A DNA stretch of 64,000 nucleotides from Klebsormidium nitens (GCA_000708835.1 DF237188.1:62001-126000), one strand, 5' to 3'. Positions 48,201 to 59,498 are shown, numbered from the stretch's first letter. The notes: generated by a model not told the origin, from the sequence alone. Program-made: numbers and translations.

Positions 48201-51200
48201 CTTTCCCGGAGAAGGGGATGCATGACCTGGGGGCGTACGTGGAGGCGCCAGCTGTCCTGGGGGCGGGGTTGGCTGGCCCGCTCCGGCCTGCCTCCTTGGG
48301 GCGGTGGTTCTCAGGAATCCTCAAGAAGGTGGTCCCCATGGGGGGCAAGGCGCCCTCAGATCACGAGCTGGCCAGCGCCCCTGCCGAAGGGGGCCTGGGC
48401 CAAGCAGACATGCCGGGGGGTGCCGCAATGCAGGGGGAGGGGCCAGGGGGGGCGGTTGATGAGCCCAACCTGGGAAGCAGCGAGCCTGTGAGTGGACCCT
48501 CAGAACCCAGCAAATATGTTCCAACACTAGAGAGCGGGCCTGCGAGGGATGGGACAAGGGGCGAGCCTGGGGGGGAGGCCGGGCAGGGGGAGACAGGGGC
48601 AGGCCAGGAGGTGAGGCAAATGAAGGCTGCATCGAATGAGGAGGCGACTCCTGAGGAGAAGCAGAACACCAAGCCCGCTGCAGAGCAAGAGGCAGGGCAG
48701 GAAGGTGACCCAGAAGTAGAGGATCCGCCTGGTGATCAAGTAGTCACAATGGAGGACGCGGAGGGGCTCGCTCAGGAGGCTGTTGTTGCAGCAGGCACAG
48801 GCAGCCAGCCCCAGACCTCTCTGGAGCCAGGCAATCTGGACCATGCAGCGGTGGTGGGGCTGGAGAGCGGGGCACCGCTGGGGCTGCCAGAGGGCAGGCC
48901 TGCCGCAGCCACAGAGCAGCCTGCCGCAGATAAGGAGCCGGCGCCAGCTGGCGGGGCGGGAGAAAGCGTGAGCGACAGCGATAGTGAGCGGCGGCTGAGT
49001 GACCAGCCCATCATTCCTGTCAAGGCGGCCAAGAAGGCGGCCAAGGACAAGGCGGGCAAGGCGCCCCGCGCCAAGAAGAGCAAGAGCAAAGCGGCGCAGC
49101 GCGCGGAGGAGGAGCGCCTTCTCGCTGCCAGCGGGCTCATCCTGCCGACCGCCCCACCCAGGGTGGTGCAGGCGGAGCATCTGACACTCATGGCGCCCAA
49201 CACATTGGCGCCAATGGCACCGAGCTACGGCGGTGTCAATCCTGAGAGCGAGGCCGGCCAGGAGGGCGGCCTGGCGAGCTTGTACAACGCGGCCAGGGAC
49301 ATTGTGGCGGACTTGCAGCGCGCGCGCAGCCGGCGGACGACCGAAGGGGGCAGCGGGGCGGATGTGGCGGCTGCGGTGCGGGATAAGGTGCGCGAGTACT
49401 TCCAGTCCAACCTAGTTCGCTACCAGCGCTCCTTGGACGACCTGGACGACTACGACTTCATTGTTACGCCAACTGCGGGAGAGGGGCGCACACGCGACTG
49501 GGAGGTCGAGTTTGAGGCGGCGCCCAACGTGGCGGGCCTGCTGGCGGTGCTGGCCGAGTTCGACCGCGAGTATGCGGCCGTTAATGCAGCCGTGGTGGAG
49601 GCGACCAGCAAAGTGGTGGAGGCAGCAGCTAAACCCCCTGCTAAGAGGGGCCGTCCCAAGAAAACGTCCACCGGGGAAGGACCCGCAAAGAAAGCACGGG
49701 GGGAGGCAGTGTCGGATCCGATGTGGCAAGACGTTGGGGCCCAGGGCGTCACGTCTGCCGGCGGCGCGGGGGAATTGAGCGAAGCGGGCTTCTCGTCGTT
49801 TTTGGAGGCCATGGGGTCGCAGCAGTCGGCAGGAGACTCCATGGGAGGGGCCGGGCCAGACAGCGGCCAGGGCGGCGACTCACACCTGGGGGGAACGCCG
49901 GGCTTCCCAGGGGGCCAAGCTGTAGCGCAGCATGTGGCGGGGGTGTACGACTTTGGTGCAAAGGGACCCCCCCCTGTGACGGTGGTGCAAGTGGGCAAGC
50001 GCGGCGGCAAGAAGTCCCCCAAGACCGTCAAGGCGGATCCTCTAGAGGGCCTGATGAACTTCCCCGTGTCCCAGGCAGCTGCGCGCGCGCCCGCCCAGAT
50101 GCTGAGCGTGTACGCGACCAAGCCGCGCAAGAACGCGGCCGTGACGCTGACGTCGGAGCGGCAGGCGGCGGACCAGTACCCGCAGCAGATCGGGGACAGG
50201 CTGGTCGTGTCGGAGGAGGGGGCAATCCTAGAGCAGGTGAGTAAAGCATCTGGGACCCAATACCTCGCAACCTGGTGCAAGTGTCGGGAGGCGTGTGCAT
50301 GTCTTCCGAACCAAAGCTCTTTTAGTCGAACACTTCGACGGTCGACAGGGAACCAGTCTCGATGTGGTACTCTTCTTCCTTCTGGTCAGAGGCGAACGTG
50401 CTAACAATGCAATTGTGGCAATTACTCAGCTTCACTTTCATGACCTATGCCGGAACAAGATGCGAGCCATTCGGTGTGACAGTCTGCGCTTTAAGAGTAT
50501 TGTCCATGGCGCAAAGCTTAATTCTCTTTTTCGTGCAGGTGACGGGCAGCGGCGTGGGCCCGCTGCAGGTGATGCAGCGCGTGGGCGACCAGCTGATCCT
50601 GCTGCCGTACCGCAAGGCCGCCGCCGTGAAGCGCCAGCTGCTGCGCCGCGAGAAGGCGCCCGTGCAGGTCGTCACCAAAGCGCGCCGCGCCAAGGAGCGC
50701 ACGCTCGCCAAGAAGGGCCTCCTTGCGGTCGCAGGGGCCGCGTCGGCGGGGCTGACGCCGCCCCCCTCGGGGAGCACGTCCTCGGGCGTGGCGCAACCCG
50801 CAGAAGCGAAGCTGGCGGCAGAAGATGTGACGGAAGAGCAGCTGAGGGCGGCACTGGGGCTCTCCGGCCCGAGCGAGGGAGGGTCAGAGTCGCTGTCGTG
50901 GATGGGGGGGGCCAGTGGGGCCCCGGCAGAGAGTGGGCTCGACCCGGGGTTTCAAGCAAGCAGCGCGCCTGATCTGATGCCGGCCTCAGGGGCTTTGCAA
51001 GGGCTGGGCCAAGGGTTAGGGCAGGGTTTGGGGCCGAGGTTTGACACGGGCTTAGGGCAAGGTTTAGGGCCGGGGTTTGACACGGGCGCAGCGTGGGGCG
51101 GGCAGCAGTACGGGGCCCCTGGAGCGCAGCACTTCGGAAGCCAGAGCACGACGGGGGGTGCTGCGACTCTCAACTTCGACCTGACAGGAGAGATGGACCC

Positions 51201-53024
51201 TCTTGCGCTCCCTCTAGATACGGGTGCCAGCAACCCGCCTGCAGAGGGACTGAGGCAGCCAAAGCGGGCCCCCCAGCCCAGAGGTCGAGGGGGAGGGGGG
51301 GGCACGGGGCTCCTGGGGGGTAGCGAGCAGTGGGAACTGACAGAAGGGCAGAGGAAAGAAATTGACATTCGCAGTGAAGATGAGGAGTCGGAAGAGGACC
51401 CAGCCCAGGGTGGGGGAAAGCGGAGCGCGGATGCGGCGTTCCTGGACGAAACTGGCTTGGAGGCTCCTGCTGAGAAGTGGTTTCCCGAGCATGCCGTGAA
51501 AAAGCGGAGGAAGTTCCTCGAAGTCGGTCTCGAGGGCGGGGCTGCCAAAGGTGGGGGGCAAGAGACACTTAGCGTGCAGCTTCCCTTGTCAGAGAGGCGA
51601 GAGGATGACAAGCCCCGCGAACGGAACCTATCCATCCGTGGGGGTGGCATCGAGATGACCAGGAAAATTGCCCGGCGGCCGCGGAACAACAGCGCCACCT
51701 CTCCCGGGGCGCTGAGCCCCTTCGCCTCCGCGGCAGAGCAAGGGCTGCCCAGCCCGGCCTCGGCTGTGACCCCCCGGCAAAGCAAGCGGCTGCGCAATCC
51801 TCAGACCCCAACCTCCCAGGAGGAGCCGCCGAAGGCCCCTGAGCCACCAGTAAATGCGGCACCGGCGCCTGTTCCGGTCACCGTCACCCAAACCATAACC
51901 CCGGCGGATGTCGTGCTCCCTGCGCCCGGCCAAGTCGTTCTTGCGCCGCCCGTGCCGGCCGTGCCGCGCCCGCCCGCCCCCCCGACGGTGACGATCAACA
52001 CGCGCGCCGTGCCCATCACCGTACAGGGCCCTCCTCCACGAGCCACGGGGCCGCTCGCCGGCCGCCCCGCGCACCCTCTCGCCAAGGGCGGGCAGGGCAA
52101 GTCCCAGAAGGTGGTCACCCTGGACGCGATCCTGGGGCGGCCCCTGGAGGCGGCGCCCCCCGCGGGGGCGGCGGTGCATGCGTGCAGCTGGCCGGGGTGC
52201 CCGCGCGTGTTCTCCACGGTGCAGGCGCGGTGCGGGCACATGAGCAGCCACAAGCCGGTCAAGAGCCGCGCCTCCGAGATGGCCACCAAGCAGGCAGCCG
52301 CGCCCGCGCCACCGCAGCAGCAGGGCGGCGGAGAGAAGGTGCTGGACAGCCGCGTCTTCTTCGGGGGGCTCAAGAAGGACGAGGAACCGGGGGAGAGAGA
52401 CGGTGACGCGGACGGGGAGGAGGGGCTGCCCGAACAGGGGTGGAACGGACTGTGCCGACTGGTGAGTAGGGGGTCACCTGAAGCATTGGTGGAGGGAGAG
52501 TAATACCATTCAAAGGACTGGCCGCATCAGCTTGTTCTGTTTCACAAAAGGAGGTCTTTCACCTTCTGAACCGTTGTGCGATGCCTTCCTGTTTGCTCCC
52601 ATCACTTCTGCAAAAAGTGGTACCCGATGGCTCACAAGATGCATTTTGTATGTTTCAGGTGGGCGACAGCCTGGTGTGGCTGGACGAGCACGGCCAGACG
52701 GTGTCCATCCGCTACGTCTGCACGGAGCCCGGCTGCAAGCGGCGCTTCAAAACGGTGCAGGCGCGCAGTGCCCACGCTCGGAGCCACCGGGGGGAGCGCC
52801 CCTCCAGTGGGGGCCTGCCCGAGGAAGGGAGCCCCGCGGAGGGGTGGCGCAAGATGTTAGAGGACGGGGGGGAGGACGAGGAGGAAGAAGCGGACGAGGA
52901 CCCCCTGCGGCACCTGCTGGAGAGCGAGGGGGGCAGGGACGGGGAGGCGGGGGGCGCCGACCCTGCCGGCCAGGATTTTGGCGGGGGGGTAGGGCCGGGC
53001 CCGCAAACTACCCCACAACACTAG
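45251..53024 (+). CDS. Large multi-C2H2 zinc-finger / AT-hook nuclear protein, about 2,255 aa; 4 exons with all introns in phase 0 (0-frame product)
   Basis: Exons 45251-47380, 47888-50236, 50539-52461, 52659-53024. Fingers: CSICGFKSRHGPALTAHQKGH (~45677), CNICNKKFKNDKALFGHKGRVH (~45935), CSWPGCPRVFSTVQARCGHMSSH (~52183), CTEPGCKRRFKTVQARSAHARSH (~52719). AT-hook KRGRPKK at 49643-49663. L-box-like EMLQAAEVLMAV after finger 2. Confidence 0.85.
51001..51084 (+). repeat. In-frame 12-bp telomere-like tandem repeat (7 units, with a 36-bp higher-order duplication) encoding GLGQ/GLGP/(R/G)FDT
   Basis: GGGCTGGGCCAA GGGTTAGGGCAG GGTTTGGGGCCG AGGTTTGACACG GGCTTAGGGCAA GGTTTAGGGCCG GGGTTTGACACG. Confidence 0.8.
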
Positions 53025-53030
53025 GGCCAG
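52973..53030 (+). other. Putative -1 programmed ribosomal frameshift cassette (G_GAU_UUU, 6-nt spacer, stem-loop/H-type pseudoknot)
   Basis: The heptamer 52973-52979 is phased to the zinc-finger frame (CAG GAT TTT). Stem 1: GGGGTAG 52986-52992 with CTACCCC 53008-53014. Stem 2: GGCCC 52998-53002 with GGGCC 53024-53028. The 0-frame TAG is at 53022-53024. The -1 frame is open up to donor CAG|GTGAGA at 53030. Confidence 0.55.
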
Positions 53031-53341
53031 GTGAGACAGTTTTAGATTTTGCCGCTGTGCTGCCGACTTCGTCGGAAAGACGAAGAATCACCTTTGATAC
53101 TTTCAAAGCAGTCAAGTTGTGTAACCAGCTGCTGATGAAAAACTTCTGGTTCGTGGAAGCCAACGTTAGGCAGGCCACTTGAACCGGGTCCTGCGCTTTG
53201 CTCTGCTGCGTTTGCAGAGTCCCAAAGGCATCTTGTGTCTCACATGCCTTGCTTCCCTGATTTTGACCGCAGTCCGTCGAACGGGACAGCAAAGGTGCCT
53301 CATCCTTTCCTGACGGCTCCGTCTCTCGAATGTGCTCCCAG

Positions 53342-56300
53342 CGCGGCGCCGCCGCCGGTCCAAACGGCGGTGGGGCCCGTCGGACGCGGGTGGTCCGCGT
53401 CCGTGGGTGAGGCGCGCGCCCCTGGCTCACGTGTACGGCCGCATCGAGGCCCCGAGCGGCCTGGCGGCCCGCTTGACCAAGGTGCAAACAACGCCAGTGG
53501 CGCGCCCGCACAGGCGGCACGGCATGCGGCTTAGGATGGTCGTCAAGGGGAAGTCCGAGTGGTGGAAGGCCGGGGGTGAGCGCGGGGCGCAGGTCGTTCT
53601 AGAGAGGGGAGAGGATAACGAGGAGGCCGGGGCGGACGGGCCTGCGAGCGCGCCCAGCGACCGTGAGGCGGAAATGGTGACGGGGGAGGTGACGTTGGGG
53701 CCGCAGGAGGACCTGGTGTTTGTGGGGGAAAGAAAGCGGGGCGAAATGGAGCTGTCCAGGGGGCTAGAAGTAGAACCGCTGGAGTGCGACGTTGTTCTGG
53801 ACTGCGAGGTTGTCGAGGAGCTGGTGACCCAGCAGGAGGCACGGGAAAGCGGCGTGGCTGCACGGGAGCAGGCAACGGGGGTACCCGCAGAACAGCGGAC
53901 TAGAAAGGCGCGAGAGCCCGGGCTTGAGGAGGGCCCGCAGACACGTGGCAAGAGACAGCGGGACTGCTACCCGGCGGAGATGGTGCTGCGGAGTAAAGTA
54001 GCGAGGACCGGGCTCGGAAGAGCCTGCGCCGAGGGCATTCTGAAGCGGAGCACGCGGCTGGCGCAAACCAAGCAGCGCAAGCCGGCATCTCCCGAAGGCG
54101 TGCTTCCTCTGAACGTCGTCAAGATACGCCCGCCCAAGAAGGTGGTGGCCTTGGCTTGCCAGGAGGCGAGGCGAAGCAGCGCGAGGGGCCATCACCGGCA
54201 GCGGCAGCGCTCCTCGCCCGCAGTGGTGGAGCTGTGCGATCTGACGGGCGACGAGGCGGGACACGTGGCGGACCCAGAGGAGAAGCCGGCCGTGAGCCCG
54301 GCGAGCATCTGCTACCCCGCCGGCGAGGGTGGATTTGAACTGCACGAAGCGGTGAGCAGGGACAGTCAGTATGAGGTGCAGCGCAGCGCAGCCTAGCCGT
54401 TTCGAGACAGACCTGAGGTGGTTGCCCCTTGAATCCTTCGATTTCGCTTCCTAAATGCATTCTTGTATATCTAGACCTTATTCAACAAGGCGCTGAGATC
54501 CCTGTGATCGCCAGTGTGTGCTGCTCGCTACTTGTATTGCCGATCTTGACGTCCATCACACGTGCTGCGCGCAGGAGCTGCTCGCGCTGGCGCCCCTCAC
54601 CGACCTCAACGGCTCTCTCATTAACTTCTACATCAGGTGCGTTGCACAGATCTTTTGGAGGCGCCCTGCGTGAACCAACCGTCAATCCATGCCGTATTGA
54701 GGTGAAAGCCGCCAGCGCCTGGCAGCAAAGAACAGCGACGGATCAGATCGTATACCATCCCGCATCCTGGAAGGCGTTTGTGCGGCTTTGGACCTGAGCC
54801 CCCAACAAGCTTGAAATCAGCTCCTCCCATTCGTCAGACCCATGTGTCGCAAATCTCAGCAAGTGTGCGACTCCCCCCCCCTCGAATGCTTTCATCCGTG
54901 CCTCGCAGGCACCTGCAGCAGCACGGCGCGGTGCGGCCCGGCTTCTTCGTGGCAGACACGTACTTCTACGCCAAGCTGTGCCAGGTGGCCGCCCGCCCCT
55001 CCCCTGCCGGTGCTGCGCACGACTTGCGCTCCCTGCTTGCTTACCTGGCCTGCCCGGACCTTTTCGCGCACAACGCCATCGCCATACCCGTGCACGCAAC
55101 CGGTGGGTCCCAACCCGATGGAGTTTCCGGGCTGACGGGGCCAACTTTTATCTGCTCGTTAGGGGTGGTCTCGGTTGTTGATTGATCCAACAAGCATTTG
55201 CGCCGCCTGCTATAGCGAGCATGCCCCTGGACAGCACTCCTCACTCGTTCGTTGTTGCGATTGCCCACAACATTCCTGCCCAAGTGTAACGACGTTCACA
55301 GCTGCAAGTGTCTTCTCGTTTTCGCAAGACAATGCTCTCTTGAGCTTTGCCTATCGTGCTCGCGTTTTGCCTGGTAACCACCCTTTCTCTCCTGAGTGGC
55401 CGTTTCTCGGTGCTGCGCGCAGGCCACTGGAGCCTGGCGGTGGTGTGCGCGCCCGGCCTGCTGGCGCCGCTACAGCCGGGCAAGAAAAGGGCGGCGCAGG
55501 GCCCTGCGCCCTTCATCCTGCACCTGGACAGCCTGCCCAAGGGCCGCGGCGGCCACGACACAGCCCTCGTGGCGCGACGCCTCAGCAGGTGCGCTCAGGT
55601 TGGCACCTCGTAGATTCAAGCACGTGAACGTTTCGCCAGCGTACAGCCTGGGACACGTGTCGCTGACGGCAGAGACCAGGACTGCTTGGTTGCGAAGGGG
55701 CTTCACAGCTGTGGTACTCGCTCACCGGCTGTTGCGTAACAGAAGGCAAGGCTCGCAGGATCTGTTGTTGCAGCTCATCCAAGGGCGTATCGGACGAAGC
55801 GGACCCGTTTGTGGCTGTCTGCGCTCTGCGCTTACCATCTCTGCGTGCTTGTTGCCAGGTTCGTGAAGGATGCCTGGCGTGCACGGGAGGCTGCGCGGCT
55901 GGTGGCGGCAGGCCGGGCCGTGCCCAAGGCATGGCACCTGCCGGACCTCAAAGAGCGCAGAGTCCAGGTGAGGCCCCCGTCACAAGAATTCTGCAATGCT
56001 TGGTCTGGGCGCCGCTGCCTGCCCTTAATATGCTGGCTTGGGACTGCATGTCGGCTAGCCTAGAGGGAGGGCGTTGGAAAGGGCAGACAGTTGGAGTGTC
56101 GAGCCAGCCGCATGGGAACTTGCTCCGCATCCTCCCATGTTTCCGGTCCGCGTCCTCTTGCGAATTCTCGTGGCCCCAGCGTGGATGCTCGGTGGCAGGA
56201 TCCGGTGTTGTTCTCTACCAGTGGAGCCCAGGACGAGGGCAAGGGTCGTTCCTGCGTCCGCAGGGTTAAGTAGGTCCTTTATGGTCCTCTCTGCCGCGCT

Positions 56301-56903
56301 GACGTTGCTCTGCGGGTGCGTCGCTGGCAGGTCCCGCAGCAGGACAACAGCTGCGACTGCGGCCTCTTCCTGCTGCTCAACCTGGCGCGCTTCCTCGCGG
56401 CCGCGCCCGACGTCATCCACTGTGCCCAAGTCGACCACGTCGTAAGTGCAGCCTCGTCACGGCCAGCGTCGTGCTTGTGGCACCGCTTGCCAAGACGGTG
56501 TACGGCTGTTGTTGAGAGCAGCAGCCGCCCTCTTGTTCTCACAAACGCCTTGTGTCTGCGAAAGAATCTCGGGGCGATCGTTGCATGCAAGAACTGCAAG
56601 TGGTCAATATTCTGCTTCTATGCGGAAGCTCGCAAGGTTGCTTGCGTGCTTGCCCGGATTGCCGTTCTGCCTATGTGCTGACCGCCTCCCACGCGCTAAC
56701 TGCAGTTCCGGGGCCATGACTACCCCCTGACAGACGCCGGTCTGCTGCGCGCGCGCCTGCTGCAGCTGGCGTGGCGCGTCTTCCGACAGCAGCACGGCCC
56801 GCACTGGCGGCCCACTGTGTCGGCCGCAACAGGCGCTGCGCTGGGCGTGCAGCTAGAGGCGGACCCTCGGGACGAGGTGGAGGAGGAACACTCCGCGTGT
56901 TGA
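53342..56903 (+). CDS. Ulp1/SENP-family SUMO protease (peptidase C48) exons with an N-terminal SIM-rich region; probably the -1-frame extension of the upstream zinc-finger protein
   Basis: Exons 53342-54351, 54575-54636, 54909-55102, 55423-55588, 55859-55967, 56331-56441, 56706-56903, all in frame. Motifs LNGSLINFYI, TYFYAKL, DLFAHNAIAIPVH, HWSLAVVC (His), ILHLDS (Asp), PQQDNSCDCGLF (Gln/Cys). An independent start at ATG 53524 is possible. Confidence 0.9.
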
Positions 56904-59498
56904 GATACGTAGTGTAGAATGGTTTTGTTTCCGTCTGCAGAAGTCCTGCAGCGAGACGTGTCATTCGTTTCTAAGTTTTGCTTTTCTTGTAGAAATGTAC
57001 TTCTTTTTGCACCTTAATTTCATAATTACAATGATGTGTGTTCATAAGAGTCCTCAAGTGACACGATCCGCGTCAAATCTTGCACAGCGGATATCAAGTA
57101 CGATTGAAATCTTGGATCCAGGCTATGTAGCATCGACCGACCTGACCAATGATGGATCGCGCACAGCACTGCCAAATCGAGATCGGCTTACCGGCGCCCG
57201 TGTCATTTTTCATTCTGAGAAATGATATCAATAAATGCTCGTGTGCGAGTGCCATATGACCAGTTCATGCATTTAATGTTTATCTACGTTGTCTTGACAC
57301 AGTCACTTTCGGGCCATCCTATCATGAGACATTTGTGTAGGCAACTTCTTTATGCCTGCTAGCTCGGCAAGCTTGACATCTATTCTATGAGCCGCTTGTC
57401 TAACAACGATGGTGCTAAATCATCATTGCCTAGGTTGAGATAGACAGCTTCGTGTAGTCTGCCAAAGGCGCGGCCAGCTTGAAATCTACACATGTGTTCA
57501 ATAACCATGCATGACCCTAGGGAACTCAGGAGCTAGTGCATGAGACAAACCGTTTGACTGCATTGCACTTTGTGCTCAGTACATGAATTCGTTGTCCTGC
57601 AGATTATTTCGCCTTGGGCTGACTACTGCATATGAAATTAAGGCTACATGCCGATGAGCCGCGGCTGCGGGTTGCCATTCATGCTTAATTCATTCCATTT
57701 CACACCTGATCGGAGAACATATTGTTACAAGCAGTTGAGCGAGCGGCTTGTGCGTAAATTTTGCAAGACCAGTGATTCCTGCACAGGGTGAGCCACTTCT
57801 GCTGGCTGGATCGTGCCAACGATCGCATTGGCAAAGGATTGACATTACAATGTTAAACTGCGGGAAATGCATGATGCGTGCAACAGATAGCTTCCCGCTA
57901 CTTTGGCAACAACCCAGGCAAGGACTAGTGCAACAGGTGTATAGGGGTCAGGGCCCGTGCAGAGTGGCGAGAGGCCGCGTCCGGACGTACATGCTATATC
58001 CTTGCATGCATGTCCTTCAGCCGTTCGCATGCGCGTCTTTACGGCTGCACTCACACTGGACGAGCTGGAAAGCACGCGGCGGGGCACACCTCGCCAAGGG
58101 AGACTGCCATGGGCATATTGTGCTACGAAGCTGCTACAATTGAGTCAATGGAGACGGTGTGCACAACATCTGCGTACAGGTCAGCTTTCCCCTTTTAACC
58201 GGCAAGGCTCTTATTGAGGTTCGTGCTGTCAAGTTGCACATAAGCAACTTAACTAGTCGTGCTTCACCTTTCAAGCTACGAGGAGCATACCGGTACTCGG
58301 GTGGGAGTTCCCTCTGCAACTAGCTTCTCGACTCTGCAGATCGCCAGAAATCACCCATGCGCGGCGCGGCTCTGGCTCCTATTCTGCTTGCTACAAGCTG
58401 CTCACGGTCGCTCCTCTGATGAAGATAGACTACTGGTGTCCTCTACAGGAGACGAGACAGCTGCTCCCTCCACTTAGACTGAAGGTCTGTGCAGACCCTC
58501 AGACTGCCTTTCCCATAGTGGCCTACACGTTTGAAATAACCGCCCAGGTCCAGGCCGTTTTTCAGTCTTGAGCCGTGCCTGATGTAGATCAGTGAGCACG
58601 ATCTACCAGCGCAATCCATGACGTGTCAGTGATGAGGTGGCAGCCATAGTACTTTATCGGAAGTATATATTATGTATGTATGCATACTTAGATACATACA
58701 GCACCTTCGCACCTCTTCAATTCGAATGATTGCCCTGCAATTATATATATACTGGATTCGGAATCATGCGCCAATCCTGGCATTGAGTAACGTTCGTTAA
58801 AATTTGATCGTACAGGAGAAATGGAATTTTAGCTGCAATGTAGCATGCGTCTTATCCCTTAGAAGTGCCTTCGTTGGTAGACGTGTCTCACGGTGCAGGC
58901 AGTGCAGTCTAACATGAGCGACTGCTCGACTAGCCTCAAGTACTGCCAAGGCTCCACCCAATGGCACCCACACTCGTTCCGCTAAGACAAGGTGTGGGCT
59001 GACTCGTGCGGTATAACTAGTACCTCCTGTGCCCAATGATAAGCCGGCATGAACCAGACATGGGTATATCCACGCTAAGAGCACGTCTGCATCCATCGTC
59101 GCCATTGCCATCCTAGGTCATCGCAGTCCGGCTAGACATGCATAACGAGTGCCTATGTACACTGGGTACCTACTTGGCAGTACTGCTGCTGAAAGCACAG
59201 CTTCTCCCGAGCATCCTACCAGTTTCAGTGTCGACTAGTTTTAGACTGATTTCACTCAGCAGAAGACTGTCCAACCTACACACTTTTCTTTTGCAGATTC
59301 CTCAGGAGAAGCTGTACTACCTAGGCAGGTACTGCCTAGCGCTTTTGGGCTCACGTACCAGCTAGCGGAAACCATGTAGGCCCGCCCACTGTGCCTATAA
59401 CCTATCAGATTTCAGTACATTGGATCGTCAGATCAGGGTCAGATCCATTATTGAATCGGCGAGTCAGGTCAAGGGTCTCTTCAGAGTCTTCACTGTCT

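Follow-up and report, generated by a model that had tools for sequence, protein, structure and literature searches.

How is the downstream gene at this Klebsormidium nitens locus decoded? Within a 64-kb window (the whole stretch of DNA analysed, in which all positions are counted, on the + strand), a gene for a putative SUMO protease (ULP) follows a very large zinc-finger ORF in its -1 frame, and the first-pass annotation had read the pair as gag-pol-like, joined by -1 programmed ribosomal frameshifting (PRF). We compared the locus with two homologous loci from related algae, L003 and L001, giving a set of three loci, and with RNA and DNA contigs.

Two overlapping frames on one spliced mRNA

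The upstream gene had been described as a single ORF of 2,255 aa. Its terminal TAG is in place, and the single ORF gives way to a multi-exon model of ~2,250 codons in four exons, with many ATGs inside, the last two exons of which are covered by RNA verification (Table 1). Because the intron preceding the last exon is confirmed by RNA, the zinc-finger 0 frame and its TAG are fixed; this intron is missing from L001, which reads straight through as ...NCRLVGDSLVW.... Pfam returns weak C2H2 matches (zf-C2H2, FOXP-CC) for the upstream protein, and, at the last exon, the protein is 72% identical to its L001 homologue and also resembles P0151 of L003 closely.

The downstream gene is annotated on its own as KFL_002390175, a 555-aa protein with a Peptidase_C48 domain. 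Every joint of its exons is seen in RNA contigs, and their spliced translation (P0001) matches Pfam PF02902 (E=1.4e-10, 41.8 bits vs a cut-off of 20.7), with the catalytic His, Asp and Gln...Cys motifs visible as GHWSL, HLDSL and QQDNSCDCG. A score above the curated threshold, together with the His/Asp/Cys motifs, points to a protease of the Peptidase_C48 (Ulp/SENP) type.

The zinc-finger and ULP ORFs share one spliced mRNA. The donor (CAG/GTGAGA at 53030/53031), the acceptor (CTCCCAG, ending at 53341) and the 311-nt intron proposed between them are all present in the sequence; the resulting 53030/53342 junction is supported by RNA contigs of three studies, and a single 5731-nt contig of X5 runs from the zinc-finger exons across it into the ULP exons. 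Word depth is similar in the zinc-finger and ULP halves (58.6 vs 76.9; 41.5 vs 51.4), and the unspliced intron reaches a depth of ~4 vs 59-77 for the spliced form. The RNA contigs of the three studies and the DNA contigs carry no indel, and hence no extra G, so the G7 run at 52983-52989 is real.

Across this junction only the -1 frame of the zinc-finger exon continues into ULP, as had been claimed, and the 0 frame, once the intron is removed, would meet a TGA at 53408-53410. On the spliced mRNA no stop interrupts the ULP frame between 52407 and 56900 (758 codons); its first AUG lies at 53524, and it overlaps the zinc-finger frame by ~420 nt (140 codons). A single mRNA thus carries the 0-frame ORF and an overlapping -1 ORF that stays open from the candidate shift site through to a functional domain. 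The same layout of open frames is found in L003 and L001, there with predicted splice sites.

Table 1. Features of the zinc-finger/ULP locus, in window coordinates
Feature	Coordinates	Strand	Details
Intron before last zinc-finger exon	52462..52658	+	197 nt, GT..AG, phase 0; joint supported by X1, X5 and X7 RNA contigs
Last zinc-finger exon	52659..53030	+	C2H2 finger and acidic tail; 0-frame coding until TAG
Candidate slippery heptamer G_GAT_TTT	52973..52979	+	X_XXY_YYZ phase; unchanged, phase included, in L003 (2021-2027) and L001 (1036-1042)
Spacer	52980..52985	+	6 nt; two bases differ in L001
Stem 1	52986..53014	+	52986-52992 pairs with 53008-53014, 7 bp; 15-nt loop contains the 5' arm of stem 2
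Possible stem 2 (H-type pseudoknot)	52998..53028	+	52998-53002 pairs with 53024-53028; 5 G-C pairs
0-frame TAG stop of zinc-finger ORF	53022..53024	+	6 nt upstream of exon junction; kept in L003 and L001
Intron linking zinc-finger exon to ULP exon	53031..53341	+	311 nt, GT..AG; X5 and X7 contigs cross the joint, and X1 has loose ends that fit it
Pre-AUG stretch of ULP exon 1	53342..53523	+	Open in ULP (-1) frame; without ATG in any frame
Remainder of ULP exon 1	53524..54351	+	Starts at annotated ATG of KFL_002390175; Met kept in L003 and L001
ULP exons 54575-54636, 54909-55102, 55423-55588, 55859-55967, 56331-56441, 56706-56903	54575..56903	+	Peptidase_C48 catalytic domain; stop 56901-56903

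A candidate frameshift signal and its conservation

The G_GAT_TTT heptamer stands in the phase claimed for it, and both the perfect 7-bp stem and the 5-bp stem described downstream exist in the sequence (Table 1). The same heptamer, GGAUUUU, has been attributed to red clover necrotic mosaic virus as a slippery site. It is also the -1 slippery site of Pea enation mosaic virus 2 (PEMV2), where it was validated by mutagenesis (PMC4737148). The sequence thus provides a candidate in-phase heptamer of the kind expected for eukaryotic -1 PRF, one that is not significant by itself: in-frame NNNWWWN heptamers number 28 in 2738 codons (~1.4 expected in the 140-codon overlap) and canonical ones 5 (~0.3 expected). 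Stem 1 is predicted in all three loci (MFE -17.4 to -18.3 kcal/mol, z vs shuffles +0.9 to -0.5), and in K. nitens the stability of the downstream fold is not above that of dinucleotide shuffles (z +1.8 to -1.5); by these predictions, stem stability appears ordinary for the GC-rich sequence found here. In the K. nitens sequence by itself, heptamer and hairpin amount to no more than chance expectation, and the candidate signal appears to exceed chance solely through its conservation in the two homologous loci.

Both homologous loci retain the gene order, the TAG, the donor, the acceptor phase, the -1 offset, the in-phase GGATTTT and both stem pairings, in agreement with what the first-pass annotation had expected of orthologues. 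Across the three loci, 57 of 63 columns of the cassette alignment are invariant, and neither the heptamer nor either stem contains any of the 6 variable ones. Since no stem base varies (12 of 12 pairs invariant across the three loci, 7 in stem 1 and 5 in stem 2), no covariation is found in the stems. The G run following the heptamer is G7 in K. nitens and L003, with the same frames, and G6 in L001. Between K. nitens and L001, no other 60-nt exonic window is as well conserved as positions 52971-53030 (91.7%, with 88.3% for the best catalytic exon), and conservation sets in at the E-site codon, immediately 3' of an indel-rich tail. Synonymous differences are fewer in the cassette (2/15) than upstream (24/66), a marginal contrast (Fisher p=0.13). 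Taken over the three loci, heptamer, phase and putative stimulator appear to be conserved beyond coding sequence. The 0-frame C-terminal peptide of the zinc-finger protein is also conserved, and could explain part of the 60-nt island.

The 182 nt between the acceptor and AUG 53524 would be either a linker of a fusion protein or a 5' leader. This stretch is 85.7% identical to that of L003 with zero indels, and the adjacent 53031-53341 intron is unalignable with its L003 counterpart (46% identity vs 43% for shuffled sequence). Against L001, the alignment gaps measure 18, 27 and 6 nt, each a multiple of three, and positional GC in L001 is 0.67/0.47/0.89. The codon-usage frame score, which is above 0 in all coding windows, is -0.05 in K. 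nitens, -0.04 in L003 and +0.14 in L001 before the AUG. dN/dS is 0.8-0.9 before the AUG (a small sample) vs 0.33-0.57 after it, and BLOSUM scores of the stretch are the same in all three frames, so that neither measure reveals frame-specific protein constraint before the AUG. The gap-free match to L003, the gap lengths and the positional GC of L001 speak for coding-like constraint on this stretch and count in favour of frameshifting; taken together, its coding signals appear equivocal. AUG 53524 itself is conserved in the three loci, and the sequence from the zinc-finger stop up to this codon is free of ATGs in every frame.

Frameshifting weighed against other readings

In the frameshift model, the zinc-finger and ULP genes would form one transcription unit decoded in the manner of gag-pol. 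The majority of ribosomes would translate the zinc-finger ORF and terminate at its UAG, while a fraction, paused by a hairpin or pseudoknot beginning 6 nt 3' of the heptamer, would slip by -1 on G_GAU_UUU, read WRGGRAGPANYPTTLGPA, pass the exon junction and continue through a basic linker into the Peptidase_C48 domain, yielding a zinc-finger-ULP fusion of ~2,870 aa. All predictions of this hypothesis testable here agree with it. Of the gag-pol-like frameshift proposed in the first-pass annotation, the single mRNA, the lack of an extra G, the -1 offset and the conserved cassette stood; the slippage and its efficiency, the pseudoknot and the fusion protein are what we infer from them. In plants, an mRNA whose sole stop precedes seven more introns would be a target of NMD unless ribosomes read on; because the 0-frame stop here precedes seven introns, we count this background in favour of frameshifting. 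The conserved AUG 53524 counts against it, because it fits an independently initiated ULP of 555 aa. So do the ordinary hairpin stability, the invariance of the stems, the chance-level heptamer count, the conserved 0-frame tail peptide, the weak frame-specific signal before the AUG, and the lack of a zinc finger in the 8 close ULP relatives scanned. Cellular cases of -1 PRF are, moreover, very rare beyond genes of retroelement origin. On balance, we consider -1 PRF the best explanation of the locus, and give it an even chance of being correct.

Two cistrons translated without recoding constitute a weaker but substantial contender, to which we assign about a third of the probability. ULP would then be made only from AUG 53524, either through internal entry or reinitiation or from a minority of shorter transcripts that begin within the last zinc-finger exon or close to it, and the long mRNA would give the zinc-finger protein alone, with the ULP exons as its 3' UTR; the 60-nt island would represent a conserved C-terminal peptide, control of the splice donor, or a first exon or promoter of ULP. 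Conservation of the AUG behind a leader that is ATG-free in all three loci speaks for this arrangement, as do the annotation of ULP as a stand-alone protein, the depth of ULP contigs at 1.24-1.31x that of zinc-finger contigs, the conserved 0-frame tail peptide, and codon-usage and substitution tests that are not coding-like before the AUG in K. nitens and L003. A ULP-only 5' end is, however, found in 0 RNA contigs, the intron before ULP exon 1 lacks any conserved block that might act as a promoter, and in L001 a C occupies position -3 of the Kozak context. Nor would ribosomes be expected to reinitiate after ~2,250 codons, or to reach the ULP start by scanning leakily past many AUGs. Two independent cistrons would moreover leave unexplained the invariant GAT TTT and stem arms, the start of the island at the heptamer, the -1 relation and open frame in three loci, and the pre-AUG indels in multiples of three.

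The two frames might instead be joined in the mRNA itself, through a rare alternative 5' splice site or through polymerase stutter adding one G at 52983-52989. In-phase GT sites do exist in K. nitens at 52767 and 52806, the G7 run lies shortly 3' of the heptamer, and minor forms are possible, since contigs drop rare variants; yet no in-phase NGT codon that could act as a phase-restoring donor is common to the three loci, the run in L001 is G6 only, and an alternative joint or indel appears in 0 contigs from the three RNA studies. We know of no appreciable Pol II slippage on G6-7, and neither route accounts for the conserved heptamer. We consider a fusion at the mRNA level improbable. A still smaller probability, close to negligible, attaches to an assembly or annotation artefact, in which one continuous frame lacks a base or unlinked genes are joined by read-through noise. 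Homopolymer runs are error-prone and high GC yields long chance ORFs, but the RNA contigs of three studies and the DNA contigs agree with the window base for base, L003 and L001 were assembled independently and match the K. nitens cassette in length and frames, the 53030/53342 junction is dominant over intron retention, and the whole arrangement is conserved. This reading is largely refuted.

We therefore regard the locus, from its sequence, as a serious candidate for programmed frameshifting in a cellular gene of the plant lineage. The fuller claim is that a streptophyte alga employs, in a nuclear gene not derived from a retroelement, a virus-type -1 cassette (GGAUUUU plus pseudoknot) 51 nt before an exon junction, and so makes from one mRNA both a zinc-finger protein that binds DNA and, as a minority form, its fusion to a SUMO protease; in our judgement this may equally prove right or wrong. 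If true, the green plant lineage would have in it a first conserved example of cellular -1 PRF, and 0-frame termination upstream of seven introns may tie frameshift efficiency to mRNA decay.

Relation to known systems

Polycistronic nuclear mRNAs have reportedly been described in Chlorophyta by Gallaher et al. 2021, the second ORF being reached by leaky scanning over a short first one. They likewise hold two conserved ORFs on one capped, spliced mRNA of a green-lineage alga. For 40S subunits to arrive at the second ORF in this way, the upstream ORF should be short, with few or weak AUGs; that of K. nitens has ~2,250 codons, many AUGs and a ~420-nt overlap at -1, and we rejected leaky scanning on these grounds.

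The closest viral parallel is the p33/p94 signal of PEMV2, a -1 PRF signal with a GGAUUUU shift site (PMC4737148, PMC5009743). Heptamer and phase are the same in both, a 0-frame stop lies shortly 3', a short spacer leads to a structured element, which in K. nitens is a predicted one, and the enzymatic part is encoded by a long -1 ORF. PEMV2, however, is a viral RNA, whereas the K. nitens locus is a spliced nuclear algal mRNA, known here from sequence and RNA contigs, whose -1 ORF, unlike that of PEMV2, crosses an exon junction, 51 nt 3' of the heptamer. No long-distance 3' interaction is known for the K. nitens locus. Among cellular genes, mammalian PEG10 and PNMA use -1 PRF with a pseudoknot (PMC5009743) and make a short major product and a long protease-bearing fusion, a likeness that in K. 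nitens is proposed only. PEG10 and PNMA are domesticated Ty3/Gypsy gag-pol units with an inherited signal. We considered and rejected such an origin for the K. nitens locus: Pfam gives the weak zf-C2H2 and FOXP-CC matches and Peptidase_C48, with no gag or pol domain, and its introns and gene order mark the locus as a host gene. Given this lack of gag/pol domains, a pair of ordinary host genes would have evolved the signal or acquired it.

The ULP domain has SENP7, Ulp2, SENP2 and SENP1 as its best relatives of solved structure (PDB), and shares the Peptidase_C48 catalytic domain with SUMO proteases of the Ulp2/SENP6-7 type. A Pfam scan of close ULP relatives found a zinc finger in 0 of 8, whereas the K. 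nitens ULP shares its mRNA with a zinc-finger ORF. The nearest full-length relatives are ~30-36% identical, and the longest among the 150 relatives listed measures 1348 aa.

The zinc-finger and protease exons on one spliced mRNA

A -1 programmed ribosomal frameshift (PRF) had been proposed in a first-pass annotation to fuse the giant C2H2 zinc-finger protein of this Klebsormidium nitens locus to the SUMO protease (ULP) encoded downstream. The statements made there on the stop, the splice sites, the heptamer phase and both stems all agree with the sequence (see table). We aligned contigs from three RNA studies (X1, X5 and X7) and one DNA run (X25) to positions 51201-57200. The 53030/53342 GT..AG splice joint is seen in X5 and X7, with matching loose ends in X1, and one X5 contig of 5731 nt spans the zinc-finger exons, this joint and every ULP exon, placing both on one mRNA. 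RNA contigs also confirmed the other six ULP introns (6/6) and intron 52462-52658 (phase 0), which fixes the zinc-finger frame and thereby identifies the TAG as its stop. RNA and DNA contigs all match the sequence without an indel or substitution, and the G7 run is therefore real. Depth is similar on the zinc-finger and ULP sides (58.6 vs 76.9 in X1; 41.5 vs 51.4 in X7) and only ~4 over the unspliced intron 53031-53341, indicating that most zinc-finger transcripts extend into ULP. After splicing, ULP lies in the -1 frame of the mRNA, a frame that stays open over 52407-56900 (758 codons) and offers its first AUG at 53524. The 0 frame, with the intron removed, meets a stop at 53408-10.

Features of the zinc-finger/protease junction (window coordinates)
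Feature	Position	Strand	Basis
Heptamer G_GAT_TTT, X_XXY_YYZ phase	52973-79	+	sequence
Stem 1, perfect, 7 bp	52986-92 with 53008-14	+	sequence
Stem 2, possible, 5 bp	52998-53002 with 53024-28	+	sequence
0-frame stop of the zinc-finger ORF, TAG	53022-24	+	sequence
Donor CAG/GTGAGA	53030/31	+	sequence and RNA contigs
Acceptor ...CTCCCAG/	53341	+	sequence and RNA contigs

Conservation of the junction in related algae

An exhaustive representative protein search with the ULP protein (P0001) yielded two short fragments (75-80% identity), leading to locus L001, on a 31.7-kb JGI metagenome contig, and to L002, which comprises ULP exons only. A query with the L001 zinc-finger tail identified a further zinc-finger protein, P0151, and its Logan contig, L003. 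Metagenome scans provided no further orthologues, and word-index protein searches returned only P0001, P0151 and P0002. L001 and L003 are both genomic and intron-containing; L003 is close to K. nitens (84-88% identity in zinc-finger exons, 79% in ULP exon 1) and L001 lies farther away (67-86% across exons). The zinc-finger-then-ULP order and the TAG position are common to both loci, and the donor 6 nt past the TAG, the acceptor phase and the -1 relation are likewise kept. L001 lacks intron 52462-52658 and its ORF is continuous there (588-682); reading straight through, it provides independent confirmation of both the junction and the frame in K. nitens.

The zinc-finger tail diverges among the loci, with several in-frame indels, and near-identity begins at the codon before the heptamer and continues to the donor in all three. 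Within this cassette, 57 of 63 columns are invariant; the six variable columns belong to the spacer, loops or between-stem stretch, with none in the heptamer or the 24 paired positions. Were the six changes scattered randomly across the 51 nt that follow the heptamer, the chance of all of them missing paired positions would be ~0.02 by our arithmetic. When 60-nt windows are slid along every K. nitens/L001 exon alignment, 52971-53030 ranks first (91.7%), with active-site exons reaching 88.3% and zinc fingers 78-87%. Synonymous differences at identical-amino-acid codons number 2/15 in the cassette vs 24/66 upstream (Fisher p = 0.13), and the GAT, TTT, GTA, ACT and CCA codons of the cassette are kept in all three loci, in an exon whose GC3 is otherwise 0.91. 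No covariation was found in the stems across the three loci, because these are invariant.

Taken alone, the K. nitens sequence carries no signal above chance. The cassette combines the heptamer with a 6-nt spacer, a stem that may form part of an H-type pseudoknot, a third loop rich in A and C, and a 0-frame stop close by. Over 2738 confirmed in-frame codon positions we counted 28 NNNWWWN and 5 canonical heptamers, so that ~1.4 and ~0.3, respectively, are expected in the 140-codon overlap. The fold 3' of the heptamer is not more stable than dinucleotide shuffles over 45-120 nt (z from +1.8 to -1.5), nor is that of the 51 nt after the heptamer (z +0.7). Thermodynamics gave the stimulator no support beyond that of composition, and Rfam gave nothing but a chance match.

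Proposed frameshifting and its alternatives

A conserved -1 PRF is, in our view, the best explanation of this locus, with an even chance of being correct. Of the original proposal, the junction, the G7 run, the single mRNA and the conservation in orthologues are observed; a ribosomal slip, a pseudoknot and a fusion product are inferred from them. A slip at GAT TTT would generate a transframe tryptic peptide ending in ...DPAGQDFWR, with AGPANYPTTLGPAR as a further predicted peptide.

The stretch between the acceptor and the ULP AUG (53342-53523) is where one fusion protein can be told apart from two independent products. Its signals, assessed through dN/dS, BLOSUM scores by frame, codon-usage likelihood, positional GC and indel phase, are mixed. 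In favor of translation, the ULP frame is open throughout in all three loci, and K. nitens and L003 share 85.7% identity over 182 nt with no indels, whereas their flanking introns show random identity (46% vs 43% when shuffled) and differ by 164 nt in length. Per-position divergence (15/12/17%) resembles that of ULP coding sequence past the AUG (14/17/21%), gaps against L001 measure 18, 27 and 6 nt in a codon-blind nucleotide alignment, and the positional GC of L001 (0.67/0.47/0.89) follows the coding pattern of the lineage. Against translation, dN/dS is 0.8-0.9, on only 26 substitutions, vs 0.33-0.57 past the AUG, BLOSUM scores are the same across the three frames, and the codon-usage frame score is -0.05 in K. 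nitens and -0.04 in L003 (+0.14 in L001), where true coding windows all score above 0 (10th percentile 0.22) and introns average -0.07. The Met at 53524 is also kept (HGM/HGM/HRM), and from the zinc-finger stop to the ULP AUG none of the three loci contains an ATG in any frame (~0.7-1.7 expected per locus), a combination compatible with a leader that is scanned. At Kozak -3, this AUG has G in K. nitens and C in L001.

The conserved AUG and ATG-free leader are what would be expected if ULP were translated only from its own AUG, through shorter transcripts or an internal route, the cassette being kept for its C-terminal peptide, for splice control or as a 5' exon of ULP. We consider this a serious rival, though less likely than frameshifting. 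It relies on unsupported transcripts, no conserved intronic promoter block was found, and it leaves unexplained the invariant in-phase heptamer, the abruptness with which conservation begins at the shift site, the persistent -1 relation and the in-frame indels. Leaky scanning or reinitiation is not expected past ~2,250 codons. Fusion by other routes seems improbable. K. nitens does have in-phase alternative donors (52767 and 52806), but the three loci share no conserved in-phase NGT codon, and none of the contigs shows such a joint; polymerase stutter on the G run is unlikely, given that L001 has only G6 and no contig carries an additional G. Skipping of the last zinc-finger exon yields the 0 frame and its stop at 53408-10, and an assembly error at the G7 run is excluded by the agreement of RNA and DNA contigs and by L003.

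Frameshifting of the -1 type is commonplace in viruses and retroelements. To our knowledge, nearly all accepted cases among the cellular genes of eukaryotes are domesticated retroelement genes such as PEG10 and PNMA, other claims being disputed. Viral -1 PRF cassettes share the anatomy of that of K. nitens, and Pea enation mosaic virus 2 shifts at GGAUUUU, as validated by mutation (PMC4737148; PMC5009743). Its use is established or proposed in umbraviruses, totiviruses and an insect nidovirus as well. This shift site is already known to be functional on plant ribosomes. The cellular precedents PEG10 and PNMA are retroelement-derived (PMC5009743), whereas Pfam detected no retroelement domain at the K. 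nitens locus. We found no paper connecting Klebsormidium to ribosomal frameshifting, and the excerpts retrieved for Klebsormidium and polycistronic transcripts concerned only chloroplast or unrelated work. If correct, the frameshift would constitute a conserved -1 PRF in a streptophyte alga, affecting a pair of ordinary nuclear genes, and would show plant-lineage host genes using recoding to set how much of a chromatin- or DNA-binding scaffold is made relative to the form that bears the enzyme. It would also offer a natural system for the interplay of frameshifting, exon-junction complexes and NMD, and the annotation of ULP as a separate gene would need correction. Even without frameshifting, it would still have to be explained why a conserved mRNA places a second conserved ORF behind a stop that lies 6 nt short of an exon junction.

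Genes and minor features of the locus

The downstream ORF is annotated as KFL_002390175 ('Ubiquitin-like protease family'; 555 aa), starting at ATG 53524, and contains a Peptidase_C48 domain (PF02902, E=1.4e-10; Pfam); its closest solved relatives are SENP7 and Ulp2. No zinc finger was detected by Pfam in the eight close ULP relatives scanned, and the longest of the 150 relatives listed measures 1348 aa. The upstream C2H2 gene, mostly low-complexity, is multi-exon and not the single 2,255-aa ORF initially described; a total near 2,250 aa fits plausible splice sites (47380/47888 and donor 50237); RNA support within it covers the last two exons. ESM Atlas gave no informative result on the zinc-finger region.

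RNA contigs from all three studies stop at nearly the same point, ~48600-48900, inside zinc-finger exon 2; along the transcript this lies some 2270-2360 nt upstream of 51201. An internal repeat, a variant or a fall in coverage may be responsible. Low-depth RNA contigs (~4 vs 59-77) at 53005-53327 and 54628-54876 retain introns 53031-53341 and 54637-54908, pointing to a few percent of intron retention or to pre-mRNA. The former intron contains a TGTAA, the chlorophyte-alga type of polyadenylation signal, at 53128-53132, with no sign of its use in the contigs. The 197-nt intron 52462-52658, present in K. nitens and L003 and not in L001, represents a gain or loss among close relatives. L001 also carries a threefold 15-nt tandem repeat (1930-1990) encoding KVQ(N/K)S; the K. 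nitens counterpart is one TKVQT, and the resulting length difference is in frame.
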